64,000 bases of DNA from Klebsormidium nitens (Eukaryota; Plantae; Klebsormidiophyceae), in assembly GCA_000708835.1 (NCBI GenBank), contig DF237069.1, positions 124,001 through 188,000 on the forward strand, in the 5' to 3' direction. The notes beneath the pieces are model-generated. The model saw nothing but the letters and a program-made list of their open reading frames with translations, was not told the DNA's origin and made no database searches. A program made the position numbers and the translations under genes. This document shows, one piece after another, positions 2,371 to 28,053 of the stretch (the stretch's first letter is position 1; each line of letters begins with the position of its first letter).

Positions 2371-4158
2371 GTAAGATGTTCACATTACCCTGACAAAATA
2401 AAGCAGACGTGTCTGCTCCTCACTTGGAGATATAAAGGTCCGACGATTGTCACGAGTTTCCCGCTGCTCAGTTAAAAGGGCCGCACACCCACCACTTGTA
2501 TATGCATGGCTCAATAAGCGCAGTCCATTTTCTTCCTTGCAAGTACACAGTATAGGTTGTGTATGGCTGATACATGCGCTCAGGCTGGATCGTGCTTGCG
2601 TTGCTCACTTTAATTGTGCAATTATCACGCAAACGGATATTGAAGTGTTAGCACGCTGTCCGCGCGGTCGATGCGAGACCAGGAACGAATCATGCTGTGA
2701 AATATGTCCCTATAGGGTGTACTTTGATAAAATTCATTGCGCATGCCAGGGTGCCGCCTGGCATGCATGGCTGGTCAGTGTGCACATCGTCGAAATGCGT
2801 GACTTGTTGTGCAGATTGTATATCTATCTAAGATTCAATGACGGACTGCAACTTTTGTTGCATTGTCCGTTTCCATGCCTCAAGTTATCCATGTCACGCA
2901 AAAAGAATATATGCATGCCGGCGCGGCGCGCTGCCCAGCCTGCTGAGGCCGGCGGGAATTGATTCCATAATGTTAGAAATCTGGGGGTGGCCCGGCAGGC
3001 TTGCATGCGTATAGGTGGACGCAACGATCGAGATTAGTACTGCACATGCCAATGAGTCCTGCACGGGCCCGGCCATATATGCATTAGCCGCAGCATCAGT
3101 TGGACATGATACAGTCACTCGCGAGCACCGTGCACGGACGTTTCAGTAAATGGAGAGTCAATAGTGAACTGCAACGTATTGAGAAACCACTCGCATGGCC
3201 ACTCATTTGCTCCCCGTTTGCTGTAATGACCTTCCTATCCGTTTTCCTTGACCTGCCATGATCAATGAAAAAGAACAAAGTTCTTTGATACCTCCGTTCA
3301 ATGCAGAATCGAGGGGGCAAGGACCGCGTCATGTCATCTGATCAGATCGAGGACGTTGCGCCTTCGCTGCGATCCGGATTGCTCTTCGCGTTGCTCATTT
3401 TGCTGACGCTTACTCGACAGGTGTGCAAAAAAGGTTCGAGTATGCCCGCACTAGATGAGCCGGCCACTCAGTGCCGGCTGAGCTCTACGTCGATTCAGCG
3501 TTGGTTCGACTCTTACCTTGTTGGTGCGCAATGTCAGAAAGATGAACTAGAGTGTGCCCAGTGCAAGGCTTCAGTTATGTAGATCGCGGTACATACTTTT
3601 GCAAATGTGAATTGTGACTCGGACCTCTTTCGAAGTTTCGAAAGGAGAATGGAGAATGGCCATGCAGTAGTCTTGACCCGATCTTTGACCGACTGCGATT
3701 CGGAAGAGACGACAAATGTGGAGGAAAGCGAAGATCCTGCTGCGAAGATGTGAGCAACAGCCCGCACACGTCGAATATGAGAACAACAGGGCGCGCAGGA
3801 CGCGTAAGGGAGCTGTATAGGAGGGTGCATGAAAGACGAGCGCGGCGCCATATTCGGCTAAGTGCGCCTCTCGATCAAGGTCCAGGCGTTAGTAGATTCA
3901 GAGTGAAACATTCTGACCCGGGCTCCTCGTTGAGGAACCTTTTGAGCGGTCTTCGATACTTTTGCGAAGATCAACCTGACATAATTCTGATCAGGTGCAT
4001 CTTGCACTTATCTCGCTAAGGAATCAATCTTGAGGACTGAATCAAAAGGACAAATGGCTTATACATCGTGCAGGCAGTGCAGCAATGAACCAATATCGCA
4101 CTGCTTCGTTTGAGGGGCTGAAAGAAGGGATCAGGCTAGCAAGGCTGGTCTCGAAAAC

Positions 4159-6759
4159 ATGGAGGAAGGTGCCAGTTTTATCCTCAGGTTACCAAGCGAG
4201 GTGCAATTGAAGATCCTTGACATGGCTGAAGATTCTGAGGCCAACAGACGATGTTACGAATTGTTTCCACTCGGTCCTATTTGGGCCAGGTGCAGGTGGG
4301 CCAAGCTCGCTGTTGTTAGCCGATTGTCACCAGCGCCTATAAGTCCTTTTATCAGCTAGGAAGTTTATGTGATCAAGGCAGATGATTTTATCGTTGATCC
4401 TGTATGTAGGTGCTTGTAATTGTCCGTTGACTTGGACCTTGACGAATGTTAGCACAACCTGGCTGTTTGGTTGTTCATGCAATGACGTTGGTCTACCAAT
4501 CTTGAAAATAGTATTTGGGGGCTGAGCGTAACAACCATGACCAATGCCTTCAAGACAAAGTTGTAGATGTTGATCATCCTACTAAGCGGATGCCCTTCAA
4601 CCCTGATATCTAACCATGCTTCCCTTGCAGCTTGGTTTGCAAACAGTGGCGTGACTTGTTTGAGAGTCGCCATCCTTGGCCTCATTTGACCCTCCGGATC
4701 ACAAACCGAGCTGCATTCAGGTCTGATGGAGAGAAGCAGAGCAGATTGATAGAATGCATGCTGCGGTTCCTTCCAATATGCATCAACAAGATTGAAAGTT
4801 TGAAGTTCGGCTGCGACGAACTGGACGAGAGCAAAATGGTGGAAATCATGCATCAGGCTGGACCGGTCTTGAAGAAAGTCGATTTTAGCTCCCCGGTAAG
4901 TTTGCCGTGTATATTCTCAGGTTCCAACATCCTTCGCACATTCATAACCTGGGTTTCAGGGCTTGTAGCATTCGATGGTCGTTCTCTCCTGATGATCAGA
5001 AACCACTATCTCCTTCCGAATAACCGGGCCTATTGCACTTTTATTCCTTTTGAATAAACACAGCAGTTGCATGCTCGCAGACTATTTGGTTACTGAACAC
5101 TTGGAAAGGTCTCGTCAAGTAGATACGAATCCAGTGATTATGAGTGTCTTACAGGGCCGCCAATTCGGACCTGGTATGGTCGATTGGTTCCGAAACTCTC
5201 CCCACATCAGAGAAGTGCACACAGCGTACAGCAAGCCGCGCTTGGAGCATATGCCGCCCTACCTGGAGGTCGCGAACTTCTCGAGTGCCACTCACATTAC
5301 ACCAGAGGGTTTGGAACGGCTTGCTGCCATCAGAAACTTGAAGTTAAGCTCCTGCTCCAGGGCCGCAAACGGTGCAAGTTTTGGGGTGACGCTGAAGCTC
5401 GAAAAAGCCAACGCATGGCATTGATGCAACAACCACCAGCTCTGATCAGGTTTTGCCGTCAAGCGCGCAAGCCATAGCCTCCCTCTCTCTGCTTCTCGAG
5501 TGCTCAGACTGCTCTACTTGCGTGTTCCAGAGTAATTTAACATGGTGCACTAAAGCACGTCTCCTTCCATAATGAAACGTCACGAGATTACCGTTGCTGA
5601 CCGTTCATTACGACCAGGTACTCAAACTGCAACCATATGTGACCGGTTCGGAATACCCTGAGGTCCTTGACTGCCACGCGCACATCGACGACCTTGCCGT
5701 GCTTTCTCAATTGGTCAACTTGGAGGAGCTCGAGATCATACGCGTAGTCATCTACTCTGTTCCCGACTGGCTTGGAAATTTGTCGCGCCTGAAAGTGAGT
5801 GTCAAAACAATCTAGTCTTGGAAATGCTGTTCGGTTACATACGAAGATGTTGATTGTCGAACAAGTTCAGATTTGATTGTTCACAAGTCCCAAGCTTTGA
5901 ATCTAGTGGCCTATTTAGTGGATCCCTTGTGAGAATTCGGCTTGTGTTCGTGAGGTATGATGATGCTCATTTGGAGCAGATTGCGTGGATCAGGGCACGT
6001 CTGTTTCGAAGCTTGCAGGCGCTTTTACCAGATTTTGAGGATCTAAGTTTCTCACATTGGTCGATCGAATCAGCTAGGAAAGACTCGTCAAATCAAGTTC
6101 ATAAAAGTCCCACCCATTCGCTGTCGTAGGGCCCCGACACCCACTCATCGTTCAAGAGATGATATCAAATAACGAAGCTGCGGTCATAAAATCCTCGTGT
6201 GCTTTGTCTTTTCCATCAGGCAGTGTACCTGAGCAAGTTCGTGCCACATCACGCCCATCCTTACTTCAACCTGCACCGTCTGGCCCACATCCAGCAGCTC
6301 AAGCTTCGTTTCGTGAACGAGATTCCCACCGAACTCGCTGCCCTTTCCAATCTCGAACTCCTCATGATGGACGCCTGGCGCTCCGAGCTGGACTTTGGCT
6401 CCCTGAGCACGTGCCCGAAGCTTAAGGTCATCACGATCGACAGCAGTAGGAACCTGCAGAGCGGCTACATGACAATCAAGGGTTTGGAGAAGGTTCCGAA
6501 TCTGGAGGCATTCCAGTATTTGCCAGAGCATTTGAACGGAGACATCGTGCTGGGAGAGGGCGGCCTGATCAACTTGAAGAATTTTGTTGCCACCGCGGGA
6601 GCAGGGCGTTTGCTGCTTGAGGGATCCCCCCAGGCTTTTGAAAGATTGTGCCACGGGGCAAAGAAGATCGTAATCAGCATGCATGACAAGAGTGCGACCG
6701 ATGAGAAAATCAAGGTGGGGATTCAGGGCATACTCCGAGCGGCGCGAGCCTCGGTGTGA
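4159..6759 (+). CDS. F-box / leucine-rich-repeat protein (spliced)
   Basis: Exon 4159-4289 (ILRLPSEVQLKIL) splices to 4631 to give WASLVCKQWRDL, an F-box motif. Later exons (~5155-5390, ~5618-5795, ~6221-6759) carry LRR-like segments (LSQLVNLEELEI, LGNLSRLK, LAALSNLELLMM, LSTCPKLKVITI, LEKVPNLEAF). Internal exon borders are only partly resolved. Confidence 0.75.
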
Positions 6760-7787
6760 ACATGGAACCAAGCATGGGCTTTGGCGGATTAATCACCTCC
6801 ACACATCCGGTGCTTGGGAAAGGCTCAATCCTCCAAATCGACAATTCAGGGCAGTACTTGAAAGATTTAGACAATCTGTAAGTTTGTTCAAGGTGATGCA
6901 CTGAAACTGTTGCATGAAGCGTACGTACGCGTTAACGCGGCAGGATGCGGCTTTCAATTGTTGACAGCAGACTCCAGGTGGACTGTCACATGTGGTACCA
7001 AGACGCAAGCTGACTATTAATTTATCAGTTCAATTCGTGGTCTAGATCTAGGCACTTGATTGCGCAAGATGTATGAAATTGCAAATCTGCTTCTACTGAT
7101 ATCCATGCTTGCAAAGGGCTACCTGAGGTCGGACTCACCTGCGTTCCCCTCATCGAGCTTCGTACAGCAATATTCTACATATAGGACATAACACCACGAG
7201 TTCCGTCGCAACCAGATCATGTGTCCGGAGGAACATGCTTTGTACGTGAACAGTGCGTGCAATTGCAGCACTCAATCGAAGTGACTGCATTCTGTTCCAA
7301 GCACACCGGATCCGAAATATAGGGCATGAAGACTCAAATATGCATGAGCTAATTGAGAATTAATGCGACATTCTTGGTGAGACTGAACTCTATGCATCGA
7401 AGGAACTGCGTGCTTGTAGCCAAACTTCTTTATACATCCATTTTTCTCGACAGGATATAGCCGCAGGCTTCATTTTGACACGTACATATGTTCCAGGCCT
7501 CCCGGGGCGCTGCTACTATGGTCCGCACTGTACAAGGCTTAATGTACACTGGCCACAGACCTGACAATGCTTTCCCGTCCACCAGTGAAAGCAACGGCGT
7601 AATCATCGACTGTAAGCTGGCTGATAGAAACCAAGTTCGCTTGAGCGACTCGAATGATGAAGCTTCACTTCACATGGTCTTTTCTAGCTTGGCTTGTTAT
7701 CCTCGATCACCGTCCGGGTGACGGTGGTGATCCAGCCGTCAGCCTGGAGATCTTACAGACAAAAGTCACTTTTGTACTTTAGACGCG

Positions 7788-10700
7788 CTACCTCCTTTCC
7801 GCTATCTCTGGTGTGCCAGGCGACGTGTCCCCATCAGAGACCACCACTGCCCCCGCTTCGTCGCCTGGGGCCCGTCTCCGCACCAACCGCCTGGCCTCGC
7901 CCCCGTGCTTCTGCTCACCCCCCGAGTCGCTCGCCTGCCCCTTCTTCCGGAGCAGCTCCCAGTACGCCGCGGGCTGCCGTCCCGGCCCGGCCTCTGCCGG
8001 CGCCGAGCTGCCCCTCCGGGCCCGCACCCGCCACCCGGCCTGCTCCTCGTCCTCACTGTTTCCTCCACTGACCTCGTCTTCAACTAGCGCACCGGCCAGA
8101 CTATTCTCGTATCCTCTTTCGTGGGGGCTTTCTTCCGACGGCGCCGGCCAAGCCATCGGCGATGTGCTTGCGTCCTGACCTGCGTCTTGCGAACGGTCGG
8201 TTTCCTTCGCCGGCGCTGGAGCCTCCTCGAAGCTCCACAGCTCCGCGCTTTGCGGCTCGAGCGCCTCCCCCGACAGCAGGTCCACGACATCGATGCGCTC
8301 CGCTGAGCGCCGCCGTCCTGCGTCGTCGCGGTCACTCTCTCTCCACCCCGTGCGGATCGAACTTGCCAACTTTTCCGACGGCTGCATCGAAACAAAAGGC
8401 CCCAAAAGGTCGTCCTCCTCCCGTCCTAACTGCACCTTCGCCACCCCCACTGTGCTGCCTGCACCTCCCGTCTCCTTCACTAACCTCTGCCCGCCCTCCG
8501 AGCTTTCCTTGGAAACAGTTGGTGCGATCGCGTGTACCCTTTCTTTCTGAGTCTCCGCTGCCGCTTGCTTTCCGACTTTCTCCATCAATTGCCCGGCCCC
8601 GTTTCCCACTGCCCGCTGTTCGTTCTCCTCCCCCTCCCCTGAAGACGAGAGCTCTTCCGACGAGAACCCGGGGGCCTGCGGCTGGGGCGGGTGGCGCGCC
8701 GCATGGGAGGGGCGGGGACCCCGGGTGCGCACAAAGTGCAGCTTCTTGCCCAGCCCCGACCCGGAGACAGCAATCGGGTCGCCCATGCGGACCAGCAGGT
8801 GAGTCAGCTTCAGCGCGCCGTACTCGGCCAGGAAGAGGGGCCTGCCACAGAAAACCCCACACATTTAACCAGCAACGAAAGGGTTCAGAAATAGCAACGA
8901 AACGTTGCGGTCACAGGAGGGACTGTGAAGGCATGAAGAGGCACAATCCCCGTAGGAGAGACAGTAGGAATGGTCCACCAGATGTAAAGAATAGGCCCGA
9001 TAATGTCAGAGCTACAATGACACAATGGAGAAACGAGGCCACATTCAGACAGGTCATAGATATCTGGTTTTAGGTTACTCTCAGCTACGCTCATACAGCG
9101 CTTCCTACATGTCTAAATTGCTTTAGTAGAAGCCGAACATGGCCAAAGCCCACACCTTGTACCTTCACAGCGATTTCCCCCCACCTGCCATACACCTTGC
9201 GATACTCGGTGGGCACTTTGACGAGGTCCAGCGGCCCCCCGTTGCGTGACAGCAGGTCCACCAGCTGCGCCTTCAGCCCCTGCAAATCCCCCGGCCGCGC
9301 CCACTCCCCGTCACCGCTCGATTCAGGCACGCTCCGCACGGGCTGTGGTCTCCCCTTCTCACTGCCCTCAAGTACGTACCCCCTGCCAGAGTCAGCCTCG
9401 ATTGCTGCCCAGGCGACTCCACCCCGTTTTGCTTCGCTGAGGAGGTTGTGGTGAAAGGGATTTGTCTTCGGATTTCCCTCAGGAAGATCCCCTTGGGGTG
9501 CCGCAAGGCCCTCGCTCTGGGCAGGGTGTCCGTTGAAAGGCGCGCCTGACGGGGGCGATCCGTCAACCGTTGAAGCGGAGCGGAGGAGAGCAGCAGTCGG
9601 AATGAGCCGCTGCTGGGGTGCGTTTGATGGCTGCGGACCGATCCAGGTGCGAGACGGGTGGCGTGCCGCAGTGCCCCGTACCCAAGGGGGTGTCTGTGTA
9701 AAGGCAGGGCTGCCGGGGAAGGAGAAGGGCGGAAGGGGAGAACCTGAATGACCAGGAGACATGGTCAGTAAGAGTTCGCTTCGTCCGGCCGTCACCACTA
9801 CCGCGACACGACAACACAGGGGAGGCATCTGCGAACAATACCACGAAAGCTGGTAGCAAATCCTCTGAAGAACTTCAAAAGCACCGGCAAATCGGACCCG
9901 ACCCAACCCGTAACATCTTCCAGCCATAACCAGAGGGAAACTGCTCACCCTCATTCGGTGCTCCTGATGCAGGCCCCGCATCCCCACTATAGTCTGGACT
10001 GTGGGCCGGCAACAAGCCCTGCCCCCGCGCAAGAGCCGGCCACTGCCACACACAGCTGGCGGCATTGGACAGCGCCAGCGACACGCCTTGCCCCGTGCCA
10101 GCCCCATGCGCCAGCACAACGGTGTACCCTCGCTGACTCAGCTTGTGCAGCGCAGCTGAGAAATCAACGTCGCCCTGGCCACGTAACAGTATAAATGTGA
10201 GTAAAAACCAGACTAGCAGTGCTTGGCTCAAGGCAACAACGTAATGGTGGATCGCCCTAAGTAACCAAGTAAGATGAAAAAGAGCTGCAGGCATGAACGA
10301 CCGTCCAAAAAGGTATACACGCAACCGGGTCAAATAGTCAAAGTAGGGCCAAGGAAACCTACCGAAATGAGGAAGATAGTCGAGGGGGGCGGGTGATCAA
10401 TTGCAAACCTGAAGGCAACAAGCATCCATCATCAAAAGATGACTAAGCCTCTCAACACCTTCCTTTCGTTTTAACCGCACCTGCCCTTGTTGAGACTGCC
10501 TGATTCAAGCCTGGTCAATGTACTGCATATTGCAAGGCGGAAGAGCAGACACAATCCTTTCATGACAAGTGTCAAGAGAAGGGCTTCGAACAAAGTAACT
10601 TAGTAGTCAAAGAGCGATGCTTACAAGAAGAGGTCCACTAAGATGGCCTTGTCTGCTGCATCTTTACGACCGCTGGGCACGTCAATCAGATTCACGCCCG

Positions 10701-12922: not shown

Positions 12923-15900
12923 ATGCAGGAAGCAGGGTCGCAGCAATCTGGGGGCGGCTGCAAGATTCGTGTCATGACATGGAATGTGAACGGCCTGTCC
13001 CGTATCCTTAAGAGCCGCTTCACCAGTCTTGAAAACATGCTGAACACGCTGCACGCAGGTGAGTAGCAGGGCGTGGTCCTTGTTTTTACTTTGTGTAGTC
13101 AATCACATAGTGCAGAGGATCATAAGTTGCACGAGCTTGCCCTGCGCTCTCAGGTCTATTTTCGTTCGGCTTAGTATATGGCTCTCCATTGATGTGCGGC
13201 AGAGGCAGACGACAGGAAGAAAGCCAGTGAGCAGCTACTCTGGGGCCGCTTGCCACTGAGGATGGAAAGAGGTCCAAAGTTTGCCAAGGCCCAAAGATGC
13301 TGACGTGTATTTGTCCCCTGTTTGCATGCAGACATTGTTTGTCTCCAAGAGACCAAGTTATCCAAGGCAGACATGGAGCGCTTTGAGCAGCTGGCCGTCG
13401 TGCCGGGCTGGTGAGGGGGCGCCTACGTCTTTGAAACCCGCCAATTGAGTGCACTTATGGGACTGAAAAGGTTTTGGCCCTCTTGAGGAAGCGTCTGGTT
13501 CGAAGCAATTGAGAGTGGTTCAGATATCAGTGGGAAGCCTGTGGACATATAATCTCAAGACTAGTATGTGTCTCATGCTCCTTGCAAGCAGTCAAAAGAC
13601 AAATTGGGTGCGTTACACTCGGAGGTTAGCCAGCAGGGCAACAACTAGATAGCTTGAAAGCACAAAAACCAGGTGGGGCAAGCACGACCATGCCCCTACA
13701 TCCAGACAAGCAGAAAGAACCGGGCGCGTCGTTATGCTCACTCTGGGTTGCTGACAGCCTGTTGTTTGTGGCAGGCAGTCCTTTTTCAGTTTCTGCACCT
13801 ACCGTGGCGGCTACGCTGGTACCGCCACCTTCTGCCAAGAATCCCTTGCCCCGGTGGCAGCCGAATCAGGCCTAACGGGGCCTGCAACCCAGGGTAACAA
13901 GCCGCCAGGGGCGACAGTGGACTTCCCGGACGATGAGGCGTTCTGGAACAAGTAAGCTGGGTTTGAGACTGGGCTGATTTCGGCTCGCCCCAAGTCTCTA
14001 AAAGCATCAGAGTAGTGCAATAGTGAAGGAATCTTGCTATACAAAGTTTGTTTTGCAAAAGACATCAATTGTTAAGTTTGTCGGTTGCTTGGATCTTGTA
14101 AGAGAGTAAGTCAGGCCCTCATTCCCCTCATGGATCCTCTTCTCAGGAAAGTCGAAGACAGGAGGAGACCAACCAGAGAGGCTTCTTTCATGCTCTGTCG
14201 CCCAAGTGATGAAATAAGGTACTGACGTCACATCAGCGGACTGCAGGTACGATTCTGCTGAGCTTGCGTTGATGGACAGTCAAGGGCGCTGCGTCATCAC
14301 CGACCACTCCGCCCTGGTGGTCTTCAACGTGTAGGTAAACTTGCCAGCGTCTATATCGCAATCTGTCTCTTCTGAGTTGTGCTCTCTTCGGCTTTGGGTC
14401 GATGAAAGTTTGACCCGATGTGGGCCTTAAAATGCTCAAGATAGCGCTTTTCTAATTCAAATTAGCACGCTGAAAGACGTCAACGCACGGGCCGTCTTGC
14501 TGTGGGCTGGCCTTGTTCCCTCTCCTACCTTGCCCGAGTCATTTTCCTTTCTTCCCGCAGGTACGGCCTGGCTGTGACCGCCCAGGACAGCCCACGCTTT
14601 GCCATGAAGCTTCACATGTACGAGGTGAGGCAGCCTCCAACGTGCTCTGCGGTTTTACCATGATCAACCGATGCATTCTTACACATCCCAACTTATCTTC
14701 GACTTCCAAGTCTAGTTCTTGCCGCACATATTCCTCTCCGATCCCAAGCCTCGCTTCGATTTCGCTCTCAATCTCGCTCACACTCCTGCCCGTCCTGATG
14801 TGCATAAACGTTTGAATAATTCTTCCATATGCGTCTTCTTTATGGATACTGCAGATTCTGCAACGAAGGGTAGAGGCCCTCGTGGCGAAGGGGCGGGCGG
14901 TGCTGGTGGTGGGCGACTTGAACATCGCGGTGGCACTTGAGGATCACTGCGACTACGCGGACGCCCGCCCCAGCGTCCAGAGCTCTTTTCTGGACGGCCG
15001 GCCGGACAGGACGCACCTGCAGGCACTGCTCGCCGCAGCGGGGGGTCCCCTCTCCGATCTGTACAGGTAGAGAGAAAGTTCCGCCGAGGTTTTTGTTCGT
15101 CAGTCCGGGGTATGGATCCTCTTTCCGGGGTATGGATCCTCCTGATGTCGATGACAGAAACATTGACTCAAAGGTTCTGCGAGACACGGCCGATTCCGAG
15201 AAACGGCCCGCAAGATCCTTGCGACGATGCCTCAGCTGACAGGGCGTGGTTCGGAATAATTACCCGCTTCCCTACATGAAAACCGTTTGACCATCGCTGT
15301 TGGCAAAAACCAGAGTGTCCAAATCTGCCTGCGATTGCAACTGATAGGCGTTGGGCGGTCGTGCAGGCAGCACCACGTGGGCGAGCGCTACTCGTACACG
15401 GTGTGGGGGGGTGCGGGGGCCCTGACCGGCAGCAGGCCTCGCAGCAGGGGGTCCCGCGTGGACTACATCCTGGGGGGGGGCAAGCTGCAGGTCAGCGGTA
15501 ACCTGTTCGCGTCTTTTCGATACGTCTTTGCCTGGCCGTGAAGCATATTCTGTTCCATTTGGGCATATCGGCTCACCAGTAGTGGGGGCGGCCTCGAGAG
15601 AGAAGTAGACGCTGTAAAGTGGGTCTGCCATTTTCTCTGCAAGAGACTGAGACTCACAGCACCCGAGCGCCTCAAAATAGTACGAGGCCTAAAAAGACGG
15701 TGTTGATACGTTAAAACTTGTTCATCTACGCCCGTCAGTGTCTGTCACTCGGGTCATTGTATACGCTATGATGATTGCAGGGTAGCCCTCTGGCTGCTGC
15801 CTGCACTGCCTCGGGGATTGATGCCCAGCTGTTGGGTTCCGACCACGCCCCGGTGTGGGCCGACATCAATCTTCCGGCTTCCGCTTTCGCCTCTTCCGGC

Positions 15901-16328
15901 GAGGAAGGAGCGGAGCAGGCCATCCTGCCACTCGACTCGCGGACTATCGCACGAGCTGGTAAGATGTAGACGCCTCGCATGTATGATCAACTCTTTCAAC
16001 ATTACGCTATGTAAGATAGGGCTGATTCGTCGTCGTTGCTTGTGGTGCAATCTGATATCTGAGCCGATTGTCGTACCTCACAGAGGAGGGCCTGTCATGT
16101 GAGTAGGGAGTCTGACCGTCTCTTTTAGATGTGTATCTTCGTGATGGAGAAAAGCAGCGTTTGCCAAACGCTTGACAAGTGATTCGTGGGTTGGTGGCAG
16201 GTCGATCAAGCAGACCGACTCGTCTCGAGAGTTGGCTTCAAACGCCGAAGGCCCAAGGGCGCAAGCGGAAAGCTAGTCCGCTGGAGGAAACACCGTCTCC
16301 TCCAAGTAGGCGGGAAGAAACAGAGTAA
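12923..16328 (+). CDS. APE2: ExoIII/APE2-like apurinic/apyrimidinic endonuclease (short form)
   Basis: Spliced exons give KIRVMTWNVNGL...ADIVCLQETKL...GYAGTATFC...DSQGRCVITDHSALVVFNVYG...VLVVGDLNIA...RYSYTVW...GSRVDYIL...GSDHAPVWADI. The last exon, 16201-16328, is in phase and reads RSSRPTRLESWLQTPKAQGRKRKASPLEETPSPPSRREETE*. The EEP catalytic N, E, Y, D-x-N and D-H residues are present. Confidence 0.85.
15105..15141 (+). repeat. Short tandem duplication (20-bp period) in an APE2 intron
   Basis: CCGGGGTATGGATCCTC at 15105 and at 15125. Confidence 0.85.
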
Positions 16329-16451
16329 GGGAAGGATGAATGTCCCACTTTTGGACGGTTTCGACACAATGCAGACACCATGCGCGCAGATGCGAATACG
16401 AGATGCGATTCTCACGTATACATATGACTTCCGACCTTGCTGTCTGCACAC

Positions 16452-16501
16452 TGACCATTCCTTTGTGACCACTGTTGACCATTTCCTTTGTGACCACTGT
16501 T
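16452..16501 (+). repeat. ~25-bp tandem duplication downstream of the APE2-like stop
   Basis: TGACCATT(T)CCTTTGTGACCACTGT occurs twice in tandem. Confidence 0.85.
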
Positions 16502-17747
16502 GCCCAATGCCCCTTTCAACGTGAGTCGTTGCAATATCGCAACATTCTGCCTGACGGTCAACTTCTGAAGATATATGCTTTCTTCCTGATATGGCGTAGA
16601 CTACCTGAGACCGCCATGGACAGCATGGCGTACATGGACAATAGGTTCGCAAATTTGGTCTTTCCAAGTGTACCAACTTATGGCCAGAAGTCGTCTACCT
16701 TCAATTGAACTACAAACCCAAAGATGAACGTCCAGATTCTTATGTTTCTATTAGCAGCATCTATGCGGGTTGTACGTGCTACGGTGTTCATTGATTTATT
16801 ATTTTACCGTAATAGTGCAGCCGGGTTACAATAACTCAGCATAATCTGCTTATGTCAAGTAAGCCAATGCTATACGCCTGCTGCGGTGTTTGTTGGCTTT
16901 GCCACCAATGGAAGGAGGTCACTAGTTCTGTGCCTATATGAGCCATCGCCAACGCGTCGGCCCCGCGGCTTCCACATGCTAAATGAAGAATCTAAGCTGT
17001 ACGTGGCGATTGAAGGCGATCATTCTTACAAGACCAGCTTACGCATCTTGCAAGTTTCTGGTTTTTAAACTCTCGAATGATTTTGCTTGTCAAGCTGGCT
17101 AATTGAGCTTTGCACTATACCGTAGTACGATGGGGCATGATGCAACAATCACAACAACAGAACAAGCAGAACATTCTCTGGACGAGGCGGCATCCAGACT
17201 CCAGCAAACAAGTTACAACGCCATAGGTATGATGATTGACGGATGACTCCTTCCTTACCCAACTTCGATACAGTTGTCGCGAATAGCAGCCGTCAGATGA
17301 GTCACATGCCTGCTTTTATGTACCCGCCGTGGCTGTCACACCGTCCATTTTCTACCCTCCGGATGTCATCATCATGCATCATGCCAACCTGCATAGGTGT
17401 ACAGCTGTACCGGCCAACCGGCACATGCATCATTCATCGTGCTGCAGGCTGCAAAGCCTGTAATGTGCAGCAGAGCTGGGGCGCATGAGCCTGCCATGGA
17501 GGCCAAGGCGATATGATTCTCGTGTGCTGGGCAATGAAGGAAAGATCGCTTGCAACAGGCACGGCATTGCTGATATTTTCTGTAGATGAACGTGTTTCGA
17601 CCATCCCTGTCACTTCCATGGAAGACCGACAATAATGGCGGCAACAGCATTGCCAATGTAATGCAGGTTGTTTGGGTGTTTGATGTGAACACAGTGCAAC
17701 CAGCTCAGGAAGGAGCGTTCAGCGCGTCGAAGGCATAAGCATCCAAA

Positions 17748-20700
17748 ATGGCACCAGCACCGCGGGATGAGAGGCTGATCAGGGCGCTTCAAGCCCGGGC
17801 GGCCTTGGCATCTGCACAGAATAATATTCGGAAGAGTGCGAGCTATCAGAAAGCGGTTGAGAAACTGACTGCCCACAGGCGGCCAATAACTAGTGCGATG
17901 GAGATTGGCATGGTGAAAGGGATTGGAGTCCAGATTAAGAAGCTACTTGAGAAGGTTTACAATGGGGATGTGGAAGAAATACCCCCAGAAGCTGAAGAGG
18001 CAATGGAATACGGAGACTTGCCCATTCCCCAGGTAAGAAAATGGAGGACTTGGGCAAGAAGGAGCAGAGGGCAATTCCACTTACATGAGGTGAAACTGTA
18101 AAGAAACTGGAGGCACCTGCTGTTCAGTAGATGTAACATCCATGTAGCAAGCATGAAAGAGGGTCCCAATTGTCTCGTTGTCTGGTTGTCTGCTCATCTC
18201 GTTGTTGTGAGCCTTGAGGCTAACTTTTTGCTGCTGCCCAGTTGCCCCGTACATTCAAATCAGGAGCCTCTACATCGCCCTCTGTTTTGAAGCAGGAGCC
18301 CTCTCCTGCATCCTTCCGTCGCCTTGTGCTGGGGCAATCTGAAGGGCCTTTTGAATGCAGCAAAGTCAAATAGCCCTGGGCGTTCCTTTGCTTGCCATGT
18401 GCCTCCTGTCTCTTGGTATGTGCATCCTATCAACAGTTTTCTACGTTCGATCTCTCTTGACCTCTTTCGTCAAAGGGTGGAGCATTGACCCATAAAAGCT
18501 GCGTACCGCCCACAGGGTTTCGCCTACATTCCTGGCCCCAACACTGGCGCCCGTGCCATTCTCATTGCCATGTTTGGTGAAACAAAGAGACCCGGATATC
18601 CAGGCTTCCTGATGAAAGATCAAATCCAGGCGGCAGCTACAGCAACAGGTGACTTTGACCATCCTTTAAGCTGTACAAGATGAAGGAATACGTCTCGGGT
18701 GTTTGTCAGTGCTTTCTCTGTTGAAAAGGTGCTGTTGTGTTTTCTTGTGCGCTTCTATCATCATATCCAAAGAAACTATCAAAGTAGATATCTGACCCCG
18801 TGTACGTTTCTGCAGGAATCAGCAACACCTCAATGTATCCGCAGCCCAATGTGGGCCGCTTCTACAGTGGTTGGGACGGGATCAGAACGCTGGAAGAGAA
18901 CGGCCTGGTTCTCAGAACCAAACATGGTAAAAAGGTCTCCTTCACTTTTGATTCTTGGATATAGCTGGACGTATGCGTATTCTGCAGACCACTCTCAACC
19001 ACAAATAGCTGCTTAAAGAACATCTCATCACATTTGCGTGTCTGATTAATATGAGGCATTACTTTTCAACAACGAAGGGGCACTCCAACTGAGCTGTGAT
19101 CGCAGAGATACAAGAGAGCATCTGGTTGAAGTAAGAGGTCTGATATGAAACAGCTGATTGCTGCAGGGGTTTGAATGACGACAATGAAATCACTGTTTTG
19201 TGCTTTCTATGAATGCGGACCTCTTGGTTGCATTGATGCTCGAATCAGTGTCTATTCCTGGACACTGTACTGAGAAGTCACCAGTACAGAGTCCCTAATG
19301 AACGCTTATGGAATCAGCTGCTTACACAGGTACAGATGACTAGAAAGTGTCTTCCCACAACGTTGCCCGTCACATCCAACATATAAAAGGTGACCCCCCC
19401 CCAAAAATGGAGGAAAAAGAAGAAATCGCAATATGCTGTTGCTTTGCAGGTATGGGGGTTAAGGAGCAGTTCCGCCTGACAGACCAGGGCCGGCAGCTTG
19501 CATACTTCCTGGAGGGAGAGCTGGGCCTACAACAAGGGGGCCGACAAGATGGCGGGGTCGCACTCCCCCAAGACTTCTCTCCCGCGCACCGCCGTCTCTC
19601 AGGTCACTGTCAGGGGCGCCAGGCGGGGGAAGGCGGCTTTCCAGAGGTCATGATCGGCCGGGGTCGAGAAATTGAGATGGGCAGCAACTTGCAACAAGTG
19701 GAAGAGGTTGAAGCGGCCACCGGAGAGGGCTTCCGCCTGTACAAGGCGGTGTGCAAGAGCAGCAGTGCGGTGAGGAAAAAGTACGCAGTGCAACTTCATG
19801 TCAGGGTGACACTTGCTCGAGACGCGGAGGTGGAGCAGGCAGAGGCCCTGGGGCGAGTTTTCGCGGGCAGGAGGCCGGAGCTGGTGGCACGGCTCAAAGA
19901 GATGGGCTTCAGCGAGGATCGGGTGTTGGCGGCTCTGGCGGCCACCGGAGCTGATGAGGCAGCCGCTGTGCAGATGCTAGTGGATGGGGCAAGCATGCAA
20001 CGTGACGAAAGTGGGACAGCAGCGCCAGGTGGCGTCACCCAGATGGTGGTAGTCAGGAGCGAGTGCGCTTGCCCCGAGGGGCGGTCGTCTCACGGCAAGT
20101 GCAAGCATGCGGCCGCCCTGTTTTTGAGAGTGGACGCCCACCTGCGGAGCGGGGCGGAGCTGGATCGGCCGGAGCCCGGTAAGAAGAAGACGCCCAGGAA
20201 GAAGCGAGAAAACGGGGATGGTGGGTTGCAAGCGAAAACCGCGCCCAAGAGGCGAAAAAGCGGAGGAGGGGCGGAGGCGCCTCTGCCTAGGGAAGAGGAT
20301 CGCAGCCTGGGTGCAATTGCTGCACAGCTGGCGAAGTCGGTGGGCTCACCAATAACGCCTCCAAAGCACAAGGACGTGGCGCGCACGCCTGTCGGGGCCA
20401 GCCCGCGGGAGATGGCGGCCCAGGCGGCCTTTGAACGGGCAGCCATGCAGGCGTCCCTCCGGAAAGACTCCCCGACGAGAGCGCCGCCGGTGGAGAAGGG
20501 GACGGGGCAACGGAATGTGGACTTTGTCGATCTTGAGGGAGGGCTGGGCCGCGCTCACGAGCGGCACGAGAGCGATCAGGGGGTTAGACGGGCGGTCTCT
20601 GCCAACAAAGAGTCGCGCTCAGAGACTTGGAAAGGGAAGGAAGCAGCCCGAGATGCGTTGCATGGTAGTATGCTTAACTTGGGCCGAGCGACCCCCGGAA

Positions 20701-23700
20701 AAGGCAAGGCGGTGGCCTTTGTCGACTTGGACAGCGATTGTGACGACCCGCCGGGGCAGCGGGATGCTGACTCCGAGGAGGACGCCGCTCTCCTCTCAGT
20801 GGACTGGAAGAGCCCCAGAGCCAGCTGGGGTAGCGGGTGGAGCAGCGCCGCTACTCCCGCATCAGATCACCGAGAGAAGAGCGGAGGGCGGCGTGGCGAG
20901 GAGGCTGGGCGGGGCCGATCGCTTGATCTGGACTGGCTGACAGGCGACAACGCGCCAGATCCTGCCGAGCTTGACAGGCTCGTGGATACGGTGACTGCCA
21001 CAGCGGAGCCCGGGAGTGCGCCCTCGGCGAGTGGTAGGAAGCAAGGTGGCGAAGTGGGCGGCGTGCGTCGCGTGACGGTCGTAGTTGATGAGACGGAGCG
21101 GCAGACCAACAGCAACCCGAACTCGGTGTACCTGGAGCTGCATCGCCAGCACGAAGCGCTGCATGCGGTGGCCGGCGTGGCGCTGGCGGCGGAGAAGCAC
21201 AAGCTGGAGACGGGGGACTACCTTTGGCTGGCAGAGACGGACGAAGGCAGGTGAGGACTCGATGCTTGCATCAAGCAGGGTTTGGACACAAGCTTCCGAA
21301 TCCATGGGTTGTTACAAGTCATGTGAAAGTTAATTTGTACTCTTGTTCGATGAAGGCATCATTCCATGAATACCTGTCGGCTGCCCGTCCAAAGTGCATG
21401 GGTGGGATTATTCGACTCAAGGGCAAAGAGTTTTGGCGGAATTACCATTATCTCGCGGCTTCGAAGGCTTTCGTTCGAGATTCTGGTTGGACGAGTGTGG
21501 GTCTTGACGGAAGCATGCAACTGTTAATCAAGGTTACTCGCGTCCCGTGTGACTCGTTTAGCTTCTGCTATATGTGCTAGCGTGCAAACAGTCTGACAGG
21601 TCTGAGTCTCCCCCTCCTTCGATACTGACGTTCAACCACCGTGGCTTCATTCGATAAGATGCTTTGTTGCAAAAATCCACGACTCGCTGACACTTCTCGG
21701 CTCAAGGAAGCCCAGCTCGGCTGCAGACTTCTCCTGAATGACCAACCACTCGTTGCACGAACTCCGAAGGAAACACGAACATAGGATGGCAACAACTGGC
21801 CCTCGACTGACAAATTGATCCTCTATTATGCACGGTCCGTTTGCAGTCGGTCCTAGAGCCGAATGAACACCCGTTTGAGTCTAGCCCAACTGACAGTCCG
21901 ACTCAATCGAACGAGTACACTTGTAACGAGGAGACTTTGGTTGGACCGGCAAATCTGTTTGTGATGAGAAGTGACGACTCTGCTTCATGTGCAGTTTCGT
22001 TCTCGACACGGTCATCGAGCGCAAGACGATGTCCGACTTGGTCACCCGGTCGGTCACGAACGCCCACCTGAAGCAGATCCAAAAGATGCGCGCCAGCGGA
22101 CTGCCGCACGTGTGCCTCTTACTCGAAGGAGAGTTTCGGTGAGCGCCTGCCTGCAGTCCCTCGGGTCTGTCGCCTGGTTTCCGCACAAGGGTTTGTTTGA
22201 ATCTTGCTGCGAGTTGCCTTCTAGAGCAGATGCAAAGGTCGAGCTTCTTTCCAACACCTGGAAACTCAAGATGGTCAGGTGCTGGAGTGAAGGACGTGCT
22301 GATCCCCCGGTCCTGTAAGCTGTCGGGCCCGAGCACAACCCTCGACGACCTCGGTCAACGTGGAGGTTCAAGACTTCGATACGTTATCCTCTGACAGTAC
22401 TCTCGAAAAAAGCTTCCTTCCGACGAGGATTGCAGTTTGCCTTCATAGTGGCCTTATACTCGCTTGCAGGACCGCACGCAAGTTCGTGGCAGTGGCGGGG
22501 CAAGACTGCCGCGGAGACGTGGACAGCGCGGAGGCGGTGTGGCAGCTGATGGCGGAGCTCCTGATCGGCACCGCAAAGGGGATGGACGTGCCGCAGGGGG
22601 TGCCTATTGGCAGCGGGTATGGCCCCCCGCCGCCAGTGAGGGTGCTCCAAACGAAGGACGTCAAGGGGACTTGCAAGCTGCTGACTCACATCTCCGCCGC
22701 TCTGGCCGCCAGGGTTGGAGGCGGGCTAGAAGGTGGGGAAGCTGCGAGCGCGGCAGCTTCGCGTCAGATCTCTCTTGAGGATTTCAACAAGGAGGCGCGG
22801 CAAAGGAGAACCAAGATGAACAAGCTGCTCAAGGAGGCGGAGGGGCGGGCAATTGAGAGTCGAGTAGGGGACGACGGGTTGGAGGATCCGGGCGAAAGAC
22901 GTGGGTTTGCGGACGAGGTTCAAAGACTGTCCGCAGATCCGGACGCTGGTGTCGGTCCCAGCGCAGCGCAGGCAAGGAGCGGGGTTGCTGACGCAAGCGC
23001 GCAAGGGGGCCAGCCCTGCGACGAGTGCGAGGCGCAGCGGGCAGCGCTCGAGTGCGCAGAATGCGAGCAAGCGCTGTGCTCCGACTGCTGCGCCAGCCTC
23101 CACTCCGGGGGGGCCCGGAGGGCTCACCGGCTGACGTCACTGCCCCCTCCGTGGCAGTGCGAGGAGTGCGAGGGGGCATCGGCGGCCGTCTCGTGCGGGG
23201 AGTGCGAGCAGGCCCTCTGCGCGAGCTGCTCCGCCAAGATTCACTCTAAGGGGGCCAGGGCACGGCATGCGGTGGCGCCACTGAGCCTCGCACCCATGCA
23301 ACCCACCTCACGAGTTTCGACGCCGCCCGACACTCACGATAGCGTAGAGAGGTCAGGGCGTGCGCTGATGGTGGCCAGTAGCAGTGTGTACGCGAGCCTG
23401 CGCACCGTGGATCTCGGGCCGAGAGTGGCTCTGGAGCAGACACGTGGCGAGCGGGACAGAGGCCCCGTGGAGGAGAGCCTGTACCTGGGCCTGGCGGACC
23501 CGGGTGGGGCAGCGGGGCGGGCAGGAGAACGCGAGGCCTTTTGGGTGGTCCTGGTCAAAGGGGACGCCTTCCTGCGGGGCATGATCCAATCGCAGGTAAG
23601 CTTGGTTGCAAGTGCCGCAGGCGAAACGGGTCACTGACTGAGTGCTCCCTCTGTCATTCGCGAGTTGGGGAATCTCCTCTTTACTCGATGTTGAGGGCGC

Positions 23701-24458
23701 ACGGGGGCACGATAATGAGGCAGGTCAGGACGAAAAGGCTACTTTGGCTATGCGAAGGATGCATTTGCAGGTAGCTGAAGCATCACGCATCTTGTTTTGA
23801 CAATGCTTTCACATTCATGTTGAGGACAGCGTGATGCTTTCATCAGCGACATCCAGCAGCGGATATGGAAAGCCTATGGATCCACCCAGGAGTCAAAAAT
23901 TTATGCAGCAATGGATACTTGCCCCTCTTAGCTGAGCGTTTGGTCTCAAACGAGGGGTCTCGCTGCTTACCACGATTTCGGTCGTACTCCAGTAAAGTCC
24001 AAGACAAACCTGCAAAAGTAGCTGCCACCTCGGCGCTTCTGCGCATCAACACCCGCTGCTTGTGCTAACCGCAGGTGGCAGTCAGCGGCGCATCCTCTGC
24101 CACCTGTCCGGAGCCCGACCTGCAGGCAGCGGCGGTGCTCTTCCTGACCTCCCTCCCAGACCCGCCCTGCCCCTCCGCCCACTCCCCAGGCAAAATCCTG
24201 ATACTCGAAAACGTGTTGCATCACTGCCGCGCGATGGCTGCGGCGGCAGAGCGAGCGCGGCTGAATGGGGCGGCAGGCCCTGGCGAGGACGGGGACCAGG
24301 AGCTGCGCGCGTTCTTGGGTTGCCACGATTTGAATGAAGAGATGATTCGGTGGATAGTCAGGATCATGTTCTCACGAGGTTGGAACGTGCAATTTACAGG
24401 TAATCAGCTCGAGAGCTCTCTGCTTTTCAGGCACTTGGCAAAGGCATATGTAAAGTAG
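17748..24458 (+). CDS. MUS81-like XPF/ERCC4 structure-specific nuclease with extra SWIM, UBA, 2x B-box and C-terminal EME1-like domains (~1345 aa)
   Basis: Eight GT-AG exons, all phase-compatible and totalling 4038 nt: 17748-18032, 18516-18648, 18816-18926, 19450-21250, 21995-22138, 22225-22278, 22470-23595, 24075-24458. N-terminal HhH-like region (YQKAVEKL..HRRPITSAMEIGMVKGIGVQIKKLL). MUS81-type winged helix (AYIPGPNTGARAILIAM...FYSGWDGIRTLEENGLV...FRLTDQGRQLA). ERCC4 core VVVDETER...KLETGDYLW...FVLDTVIERKTMSDL, with GDxnERKx3D intact. Confidence 0.85.
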
Positions 24459-25671
24459 TCTTAACGCTTACTCAGCTCAGTGTCAAAGCAACTTGTACAC
24501 TAGAAACTCGCTCAGGAGCAGTTTGCTCTTGGATGTGTATAAATGTAAACAGTGTTTGGTTTGGCAGTGTGCATCTAGGCAGGTTGACTGTGTTTGTGTT
24601 TGAAGGCTGACAAAGGTTTGCCTAATTTCGTGTCATATCTGGCGCCTCACTCAACTTTGCGCTCAACAATCACCGTTTTGGTTATTGCGGCCGCAGGACC
24701 GCAGCTGAAGTCAATAGGGGTTCGATGGTCTCTTTTCACAGTGACGCCGTAGCCAGTGCGCGGCCATATAGGCTTCTCATGGCATACAATGTGTATGATT
24801 GTTCTGTTGCCGATGCTTAGCTACCTAGAATGATCCTTCTCGATTGGACGAAGTGGAAGTATAGAGTCTACTTCTTCAGCACACGTATACAAAAATGGTT
24901 GCTTCAACGAAGTATACGGCGGGGTCTTGCGCGACTGCAGATCAACCATTTCATGAGTTCTTCCCTAACCGTCCATTTGATTGACGCACATGTGGTGCTT
25001 GCAAATCTGGTGCTTGGCCCGACGGTTCATGAAATCGAAGTGACAACTACCTGTGGATTTCCTAGATCATTCTTATACTAAGATGGACGAACCAGTGTAT
25101 GTGGCCGTGGCTATAGGTATCTTCAAAGGTACATAGCACGTACGCTTGTGGACGATCTGAACCGTCCTGACTCATGGGCTACCCGGATATGAGGGCGGAC
25201 CTGTCTAGTGCAATTCCGTCCCAGTCCAAGCTGTCGGATCATTGTAAGTTGGGGACAGAGACGTACGATGTCGGACGTCCGGATCAATCAAGGGCCCCAT
25301 CTGCACCGCGTGTACTAAGACCCGTACATGGATGTAATACTAAGCGGCCGTCGGATGCCAGCTATGCCAACTTCATTCCATATCACAGGCCACGACAGAG
25401 GGCTAATTGCAGTCTCCTATGATTACCGTTGAGTATATTCGACAGCCTTGCTTGCCTGTCCGAATGCAAGATTGGACCCTCGGCCAAAAATCTTCTCAGT
25501 ACTCGGCCTGCAAAGCATTGCAGTGGCCCCCAAACCCACATGTTGCGCGTCCGGGTCCCTCAGCAAAGATTCACATCATCCGTCCCTTACTTTGGCAAAT
25601 GGGTGAAAGCCGCCTGAAATTCGAACTCCTGAGCAATTATTGTCGAGAGCCGGATCGCTTTATTGAGCAGC

Positions 25672-28053
25672 TTAACCCGCTGCGGCCTTGATCTCGCCGG
25701 CTATAGACTCCGCTAAGGTGTCAACTGTGTAATTCTTTCCAAAGAATTTGACAAACTCCATGTTCGGGTCCATAAGATACCTGCACAAATACGAAAGGTG
25801 AGTCAGCATGTGCATCGACCTTCCACCGAGTCATGAGCAGATATCTGCAACCTCCTTTTAAGGCGTAATGAAGTGTAAAAGAGTGGAGGCTTCACAAAAA
25901 CCTCTGGTCCGGTTTATCCACAGCTCATGACATCAGGCGAGGCAGACAAGTCTGCGCGTGGCTTTGAAACTCACTGGATGATTGAATGGTCGACCAGGTA
26001 GTCGTCTCCTTCCTCCTCCGTCTTCATGTAGTATACCCGGTATGCTTTGGCAGCCTGCTTGACCGCTTCAGCACTTCCAGTAAGCCCCACGAGACGGGGG
26101 TGGAACTCTGGAGAAAGGGCGCAGCCTCAATCATTTCCAGACCGACACACAGATATCTGGACACGTCAAGTCGAGATCCTGAACACGCATGCCCTGAGCA
26201 CTGTACAGGTGTAGGACAAAGACAAGGGACAAAACAAACCCTTCCCAGAATTGTGTCTGCAAACTGCTAGAACTAAACGCGATCTAAATCACGGCAGCGG
26301 CATTCGAAAGTCGTGGTCCTTACCTTTGACATATCGCCCCACTTGTTCCACGTTATCTCGTTCTGGATCAACTGAGATGAAGATAGGGACGACCTTGACA
26401 CCGATGTTTGTCTCCACCTGTGGAAAAACGTAAGGTCAATACCCAGACATAACCAGGAGCTTCGTGCAACTTGTCGACTCCCGTTCGGATCCAATAATAC
26501 GATAAAAACTTTAGCTGGAAGAAGCACACGCCTTCTGGAGATCAACCGCTGGTCATCGACCAAACAACTTAAAGTGTATAGACATCCCAGCCCTCAGCCC
26601 TCAGCCCTCAAGTTCCGCAGTGCCCGGGACTGGCTCCTCACCTTGTCGATAGCCTCTGCCATCTTCTTCAACTCGTCAGGACAGATGTCCGGGCAGAAGG
26701 TGAAGCCAAAGTAGACCAGGTTCCAGTTCCCCTTGAAGTCCTTGTCCGTCACCTTCTTCCCATCCTGGTTCACGAGCTCAAACGCACCGCCAATTGCTGC
26801 CTTCCCGACGGACGGACCCTGTTTGACCGTTTCCAGCTTCCGTCGCTTCTCTCGATCATAGAACGCCAGCAGGCCCGCTCCTGTGATCAGCAGCAGGGCG
26901 AGGCTCCCCCAGGACACCGGCTGCAAGAGGGACAGCCGGTTGCTATTTCCACATCCAGAGAAACAATCTCACCCAGCCCTCTGCCATGACTCATGTGGGT
27001 TTTCCTGCTTGGATAAAGTAGATTGGGAGTTGAAGTATGTCAGTCAGTCGCAGAGTATGCTAGCATGTCAGTCAGAGTGAAGGCAAACGTTTTCAGCAAG
27101 ACTGGTCCCCCAAAACGGAGTAGGAGGATGGGGCTGTTGAGATAGGAAAGATCCTGGATAAGGGGGCTAGCCTAGAGAACCAAACAGAGCATTTGAGCCC
27201 AAACATCTTACTTGATTGTCTGATGATTATCAATTTGAAACTTTCAAGGCCTGTGCACCAACTGATGCTAAAATCCCGCATCACCATGCGGCGTTATCTG
27301 CAAGCCCGGACCTCCATCTAACATGTCAACAAGTGTTACTGCTACTGAGCAAAAGATCTTCTGTTGGAACCTGTGTTTGATTGGAACCACGGTGGATCAT
27401 GAACTATTCCTCTATGTGACCAGAGGAAAAACGTTGATTGTCAGCACCCTTCCAGGAGTATGAAGTCAAAATGTCGCTCAAGATCTGCCTCGGACGAGCA
27501 TCTCTACGACGGACAAAACAAACGCACCACCACACCATCAATCACAAAAGTAGGCCCAGATAGCAGAGCAGTGATAACCTTTCGCAAGTGCATCCTTCGT
27601 GACCTGGTTTGCAGCTCCAGCTTTACTGCTTACCCCTGACATTCTTCCCTTCCGCATAGCCACTGTAGCAGCTGGCGTCTGTTCTCCTGACGTACTGGCT
27701 GCTGCCTCCGGTATAGGCTTATCTTTGCCGGCCTCCTTTGCTGCGGCCCCGCTCTCCTCAGCCGCAGCTTTCAGAGTCGGAGACGATGTGAACCGCCGCA
27801 GCATTTGCAATGGGTTCTGCGGCTGTTGCTGAACAGTAATAGTTTCCCATGCTGCGAAGCCATTGGCACTGTTTGCAAGTGTTCGTCCTGAAAAAGTGCT
27901 GAAGTGATTGCTGATCCGTGCTGGCGCTGCCGTGCCTGCTTGCAGGGCCACGCCGAGATCTGGGCCTACGTGTTTCCACATTGCCTGCAAGTGCCATGTC
28001 TGCCGTTCCAAATGCTGCAGAACCTTGTGCAATTTAAACAGCTTCTGAGCCAT
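25672..28053 (-). CDS. SCO1: SCO1/SenC mitochondrial copper chaperone (HCC1-like)
   Basis: Long N-terminal presequence exon (ATG 28053), TM helix [18 protein letters not shown], then [15 protein letters not shown] (CxxxC), [33 protein letters not shown] and [14 protein letters not shown]. Stop at 25672. Confidence 0.95.

Follow-up and report, generated by a model that had tools for sequence, protein, structure and literature searches.

To our knowledge, all characterised eukaryotic nucleases of the XPF/MUS81 family work only as heterodimers, in which paired (HhH)2 domains join an active subunit to an inactive one. The inactive ERCC4-like partners are notoriously divergent and change fast, and the central domain of ERCC1, FAAP24 and SHOC1/Zip2-Spo16 are precedents for partner domains that can shed every motif and evade simple sequence searches. 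Here we describe a gene in a 64,000-nucleotide stretch of Klebsormidium nitens contig DF237069.1 (positions 124,001 to 188,000 of the forward strand; hereafter the window), which encodes a MUS81-family protein ending in a tail of about 205 residues (window 23356-23595 and 24075-24455). The original prediction, made from the sequence, was that this tail is a second, catalytically dead ERCC4-like domain, turning the protein into a candidate single-chain MUS81-EME1. The stretch in question did prove to encode a genuine end-domain, both expressed and conserved, of an atypical MUS81-type nuclease of DNA repair. Our tentative preference, as regards its fold, is for a genuine, folded, non-catalytic domain that matches no known family, carried by a lineage-restricted MUS81-family nuclease and distinct from the ERCC4 fold.

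Related sequences were available from Logan run SRR23617307 (L001), from a Joint Genome Institute metagenome contig (L002), and from two Logan contigs (L003 and L004), with L003 proving nearly identical to L002 on comparison. The gene and its tail are arranged as follows, in window coordinates:

17748..24458, forward strand: whole MUS81-family gene, 1327 residues in seven exons, modelled from spliced contigs together with reading frame, GT..AG ends and conservation
17748-18032, 18516-18648, 18816-18926, 19450-21250, 21995-22138, 22470-23595 and 24075-24458, forward strand: the seven exons of this gene
23356..23595, forward strand: N-terminal half of the tail, residues 1121-1200, at the end of exon 6, carrying FWVVLVKGDAFLRGMI and conserved in L001, L002 and L003
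23596..24074, forward strand: intron within the tail, GTAAGC...CCGCAG, phase 0, 479 nucleotides, its join seen in four of four runs
24075..24458, forward strand: C-terminal half of the tail, residues 1201-1327 and the TAG stop, containing KILILENV and WNVQFT...LAKAYVK, covered by transcript contigs

Contigs from four public runs, each from a different study, were placed on window positions 19200-24700. One contig of 3.9-4.5 kb per run omits 21251-21994, 22139-22469 and 23596-24074, all bounded by GT..AG, and in each run's contig 18926 is joined to 19450 and the sequence reads on beyond 24458. Because the introns are removed precisely, these contigs are read as spliced transcripts, the runs themselves being guessed to be RNA. 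These spliced contigs back the final three introns as well as the join of 18926 to 19450, while the two introns further upstream are provisionally placed by reading frame, by their GT..AG ends and by being conserved in both L001 and L002. The contigs end between 24592 and 24642, at positions varying by run, past the stop codon at 24456-24458; a candidate GT donor at about 24400 is unused, the transcripts of all four runs staying unspliced there until beyond the stop. The peptides quoted in the original prediction are all present and in frame, with EREAFWVVLVKGDAFLRGMIQ at 23527-23589, at the end of exon 6, and GKILILENVLHHC and EEMIRW...LAKAY in the last exon (24075-24455). The ellipsis written between them had spanned the tail intron without mentioning it, and the transcripts of the four runs make exactly that join. 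The start of the tail needed only a slight shift, as the conserved block begins at about residue 1121-1125 (23356-23368), close to the 23380 first proposed, in a span that had also taken in the 479-nucleotide intron. Separately, short contigs from the same runs cover intron sequence at 21380-21641, 22223-22475 and 23592-24015, at a depth of 2-6 versus 41-87 for the spliced contig, and represent either unspliced pre-mRNA or DNA carry-over. Were the last intron retained, the protein would stop 14 residues past exon 6, and exon 7 would be missing.

The tail is also conserved between relatives. L001 and L002 each contain this gene, likewise in seven exons and with identical intron positions, and the position of the tail intron is common to L001, L002 and L003. 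L002 and the window resemble each other only in the exons of this gene, with introns, including that of the tail, and flanks unconserved; the L002 flanks at 1-7800 and 15000-20422 are not syntenic with the window. The tail is 82% identical to that of L001 (residues 1125-1327, 203 aligned residues, no indel) and 58% identical to that of L002, with the C-terminal half 83% identical in L001 and the protein fragment P0001, and 61-65% in L002 and the fragment P0004. The corresponding identities to L002 elsewhere are 64% for the HhH and winged helix regions, 61% for UBA-SWIM, 67% for the B-boxes and 21-38% for the linkers, and the nuclease domain aligns without gaps at 89% (L001) and 80% (L002). The ratio of non-synonymous to synonymous substitution rates (dN/dS) between the window and L001 is 0.19 for the tail (0.20 in its N-terminal and 0.19 in its C-terminal half), 0.13 for both the nuclease domain and the B-boxes, and 0.68 and 0.79 for the two flanking linkers. 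The tail is under purifying selection. As it is constrained, and as its identity to L002 lies near that of the other domains and far above that of the linkers, we regard it as a real, folded and functional domain.

This conservation does not extend far. Exon 7, compared by phmmer with 1.84 billion representative proteins, returned one match, P0001, an open reading frame fragment of 127 residues and 83% identity, and word searches of 5.8 billion clusters added P0002, P0003 and P0004; beyond these close orthologues, no homologue of the tail was found in either collection. No spliced copy of the tail is present in the protein collections, which hold intron-bounded open reading frame fragments instead, and scans of metagenome contigs gave no match to the exon-exon junction and no relative by peptide pattern. 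The tail is limited to a narrow clade, as far as the searched databases show, and the genomes with this protein are few and closely related, and probably green-algal. The narrow distribution and the absence of a family assignment are what would be expected if the tail were non-functional, whether as a mis-joined open reading frame, an untranslated region or a decaying remnant. Against this stand the in-frame spliced transcripts from four studies, a dN/dS of 0.19 without indels, and the retention of the tail and its intron position in three further sequences in which the introns themselves are not conserved, such that we assign this explanation a negligible probability. An outright artefact is excluded by the transcripts, the constraint and the exon-only conservation. 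The L002 copy of the tail intron (13920-14336) has its own peculiarity, in that its 417 nucleotides are a multiple of three and open in the exon 6 frame until a single stop at 14286-14288; hence the gene caller added 123 intron codons to exon 6 of L002, giving a product of 520 residues.

The protein to which the tail belongs reads, in order, HhH, winged helix, UBA, SWIM, active ERCC4 (GDY and ERKx3D), two B-boxes and the tail, from Pfam scans run one exon at a time. The further features of the gene are:

19875-19979, forward strand: UBA domain, Pfam E=2.5e-8, kept in L001 and L002
20049-20132, forward strand: SWIM domain, Pfam E=2e-4, kept in L001 and L002
21057..22731, forward strand: active ERCC4 nuclease domain, residues 713-912, across exons 4, 5 and 6, identified by PF02732 on exon 5
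23011..23280, forward strand: two tandem B-box zinc fingers, residues 1006-1095, PF00643 E=9.5e-13, in two stretches

The HhH and winged helix that open MUS81 are both found at the N-terminus, the former as PF14716 (HHH_8; 33.5 bits, cut-off 30) and the latter as a weak match to the MUS81-like winged helix PF21136 (E=7.5e-4, under the cut-off, from a 44-residue exon fragment). UBA and SWIM are insertions, placed after the winged helix and before the nuclease. The ERCC4 domain was recognised by PF02732 on exon 5 alone (E=1.7e-5, 25.2 bits, cut-off 24), with VVVDETE and GDY in exon 4, ERKTMSD and LLLEG in exon 5 (21995-22138), and VRVLQTKD in exon 6. GDY and ERKTMSD are invariant across three orthologues, in agreement with the GDXnERKX3D signature of MUS81. 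Hence the nuclease looks catalytically intact, as VVVDETE, GDY, ERKTMSD and LLLEG are all in place. The canonical C-terminal (HhH)2 of MUS81 was not found, with no HhH family in residues 826-1327 at E<=1 in Pfam, and the exon-by-exon scan detected no Pfam family downstream of the nuclease other than the B-boxes. The latter, for which the closest PDB match is 7wsj, a tandem B-box from plant CONSTANS (E=8.8e-7), lie between nuclease and tail, in the place where canonical MUS81 has (HhH)2. Such domains can bring about self-association and so offer another route to dimerisation. The long disordered insert also contains two short hydrophobic-acidic motifs, VDFVDLE (20517-20537, residues 533-539) and AVAFVDLDSD (20709-20738, residues 597-606), the first partly kept in L002 and the second near-identical in L001 and L002. 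They look like SUMO-interacting motifs, which are usually described for EME1, not MUS81.

Against this background, the two components of the proposed catalytically dead ERCC4-like domain met different fates. The lack of a catalytic motif was borne out, as GDXnERKX3D is not present in residues 1121-1327 of any orthologue, the real motif pair lying upstream; the profile similarity to ERCC4 did not materialise, leaving the fold neither supported nor excluded overall. We consider a dead ERCC4/EME1-like fold of the tail to be conceivable but doubtful. The same applies to the wider explanation in which a degenerate pseudo-nuclease of EME1/ERCC1 type packs on the active nuclease of the same or a second chain, as a single-gene equivalent of MUS81-EME1. 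Several observations favour it. Firstly, the tail sits on a MUS81-family protein whose GDY and ERKx3D nuclease is intact and in which no (HhH)2 was detected. Secondly, the tail lacks a catalytic motif and, at about 205 residues, is comparable to the 200-residue nuclease domain. Thirdly, an orthologue-averaged profile of Chou-Fasman type, which finds most of the elements known for the nuclease domain used as control, gives the tail the nuclease order (strand, possible helix, strand, strand, helix, then, after a gap, strand, helix, helix, strand, helix). This order is compatible with an ERCC4-like core, a restriction-endonuclease-like alpha/beta fold around a six-stranded sheet, without being specific to it, the method being crude. 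Fourthly, L002 has an insertion of its own in the tail, at a predicted hairpin loop. Fifthly, the AlphaFold2 model of the N-terminal half (four sequences), at a mean predicted local distance difference test (pLDDT) score of 40 and too low in confidence for a fold search, has two strands and then a helix where these would be expected. The segment VVLVKGDAFLRGMI may locally resemble a strand-helix segment of EME1.

The direct comparisons point the other way. Pfam, at E<=10 with both halves of the tail from three to four orthologues, yielded no ERCC4 match and no other family save a chance match to androgen receptor (E 0.11), and NCBIfam yielded none for the tail. PDB chains, searched by phmmer and profile hmmsearch at E<=10, gave no relevant match in a set expected to hold MUS81-EME1 entries. 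Local (Smith-Waterman) and global alignments of the tail to its own nuclease domain, under 16 parameter sets with 500 shuffles each, gave z values from -0.6 to +0.7, and hhalign of a four-sequence tail profile against a three-sequence profile of that domain gave a probability of 0.1-0.2%. These negatives are weak, coming from shallow profiles of only four close sequences with the tail searched as two exon pieces. Even the genuine nuclease domain scarcely registers when searched by exon (25 bits, one exon), and established inactive ERCC4-like partners are highly divergent. The AlphaFold2 model of exon 7 (two sequences) is all-helical, with five helices, though at a mean pLDDT of 41 it too is unfit for a fold search. 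Language-model neighbours were never ERCC4. Those of exon 7 in the ESM Atlas (HEAT-like proteins and FIRRM) lay under the reliability marks and were taken as noise, and those of the N-terminal half (L002 13638-13919), where 30 of 30 named neighbours were PseudoU_synth_1 fragments (0.88-0.90, at most 139 shared features), as noise or at most a lead. Nor does an (HhH)2 trail the tail, as it does in EME1, ERCC1 and FAAP24: the protein ends 1-5 residues past the last predicted helix, with no HhH family after the tail. Two other candidates were rejected along the way. A recent duplication of the nuclease domain as the origin of the tail fails on alignments at shuffle level, and a zinc site formed by Cys and His of exon 7 fails on C1232, H1236 and H1249-H1250, which are not conserved in L002.

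The five helices modelled for exon 7 bear on a further explanation, as five is the number in (HhH)2. Exon 7 (residues 1201-1327) might be a strongly diverged (HhH)2-like module, displaced from the nuclease by the insertion of the B-boxes and still able to pair with (HhH)2 on an EME1 encoded elsewhere. Its extreme C-terminal position matches canonical MUS81, and L..FLGCHDL.EE..RWIV may loosely resemble a helix-hairpin-helix. Yet the G-h-G hairpins are absent, the strand-like KILILEN and WNVQFT are at odds with an all-helical domain, and a model with a pLDDT of 41 is too uncertain to count. In addition, no orthologue has a Pfam HhH match, and no PDB match was found at E<=10 in a set expected to hold the (HhH)2 of MUS81 and EME1. 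We consider this explanation improbable.

The tail as a folded, non-catalytic domain of its own, outside the ERCC4 fold, is the reading we tentatively prefer. It is transcribed, spliced and constrained, it has no nuclease motif, and the protein has visibly gained other unrelated domains (UBA, SWIM and the B-boxes). We infer that the tail would be a module serving regulation and either protein interaction or dimerisation, which may replace what (HhH)2 pairing with EME1 provides to ordinary MUS81, and which would be a further lineage-specific addition to a protein that also acquired UBA, SWIM and B-boxes. Several considerations temper this preference. An unassignable fold makes a weak positive claim, its negatives resting on fragmentary searches with shallow profiles; the pseudo-nuclease partners FAAP24 and SHOC1/Zip2-Spo16 likewise elude simple sequence searches; the crude order of strands and helices in the tail parallels that of its own nuclease domain; and a nuclease domain without an apparent (HhH)2 needs some partner surface. 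At its fullest, the idea of a single-chain enzyme would combine a nuclease with its inactive ERCC4-like partner in cis, B-boxes in place of the lost (HhH)2, and, on the same chain, regulatory features more typical of EME1/Mms4, among them a long disordered region bearing SUMO-interacting-like motifs and a ubiquitin-binding UBA, forming a partner-independent enzyme of a small algal clade; we judge this combination rather unlikely. If the tail were ERCC4-like, the protein would be a naturally occurring heterodimer within one chain, in which the contribution of the inactive subunit could be studied; with another fold, the architecture is still unusual, and its interest narrower.

The surroundings of the gene differ between the two genomes. 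In the window, a minus-strand open reading frame at 26594-26926 resembles an exon of a copper chaperone of SCO1/SenC type, judging by its CPDICP motif and its hydrophobic segment at the N-terminus. In L002, an EF-hand gene and the gene of a CIPK-like kinase, which has a NAF domain, lie upstream. Both this kinase gene and the CONSTANS type of the tandem B-box are in keeping with an origin in the green lineage.

No description of a tandem-ERCC4 or B-box-bearing MUS81 was found in the titles or abstracts that literature searches returned. The protein is like canonical MUS81 in its N-terminal HhH, its winged helix (a weak match), and its ERCC4 domain with GDY and ERKx3D. It is unlike canonical MUS81 in having no detected (HhH)2, in an additional stretch of about 400 residues, UBA and SWIM included, that separates winged helix and nuclease, and in adding two B-boxes and a 205-residue orphan tail after it. 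Hence this enzyme, whose active site is intact, which has no detectable (HhH)2 and which ends in a conserved orphan domain, must solve dimerisation and substrate positioning in another way. The tail is similar to the nuclease-like domain of EME1/Mms4 in being non-catalytic, in its size, in its attachment to a MUS81-type nuclease, and in its alternating strands and helices, but differs in lying on the nuclease's own polypeptide, in having no (HhH)2 after it, and in showing no sequence or profile similarity in the tests run. ERCC1, FAAP24 and SHOC1/Zip2-Spo16 are encoded by separate genes, pair in trans and have (HhH)2-like parts, neither of which is seen for the tail. Archaeal XPF/Hef likewise draws both halves of its dimer from one gene and needs no partner; however, it does so with two identical chains, each carrying an active ERCC4 domain and (HhH)2, rather than with a second domain within one chain.

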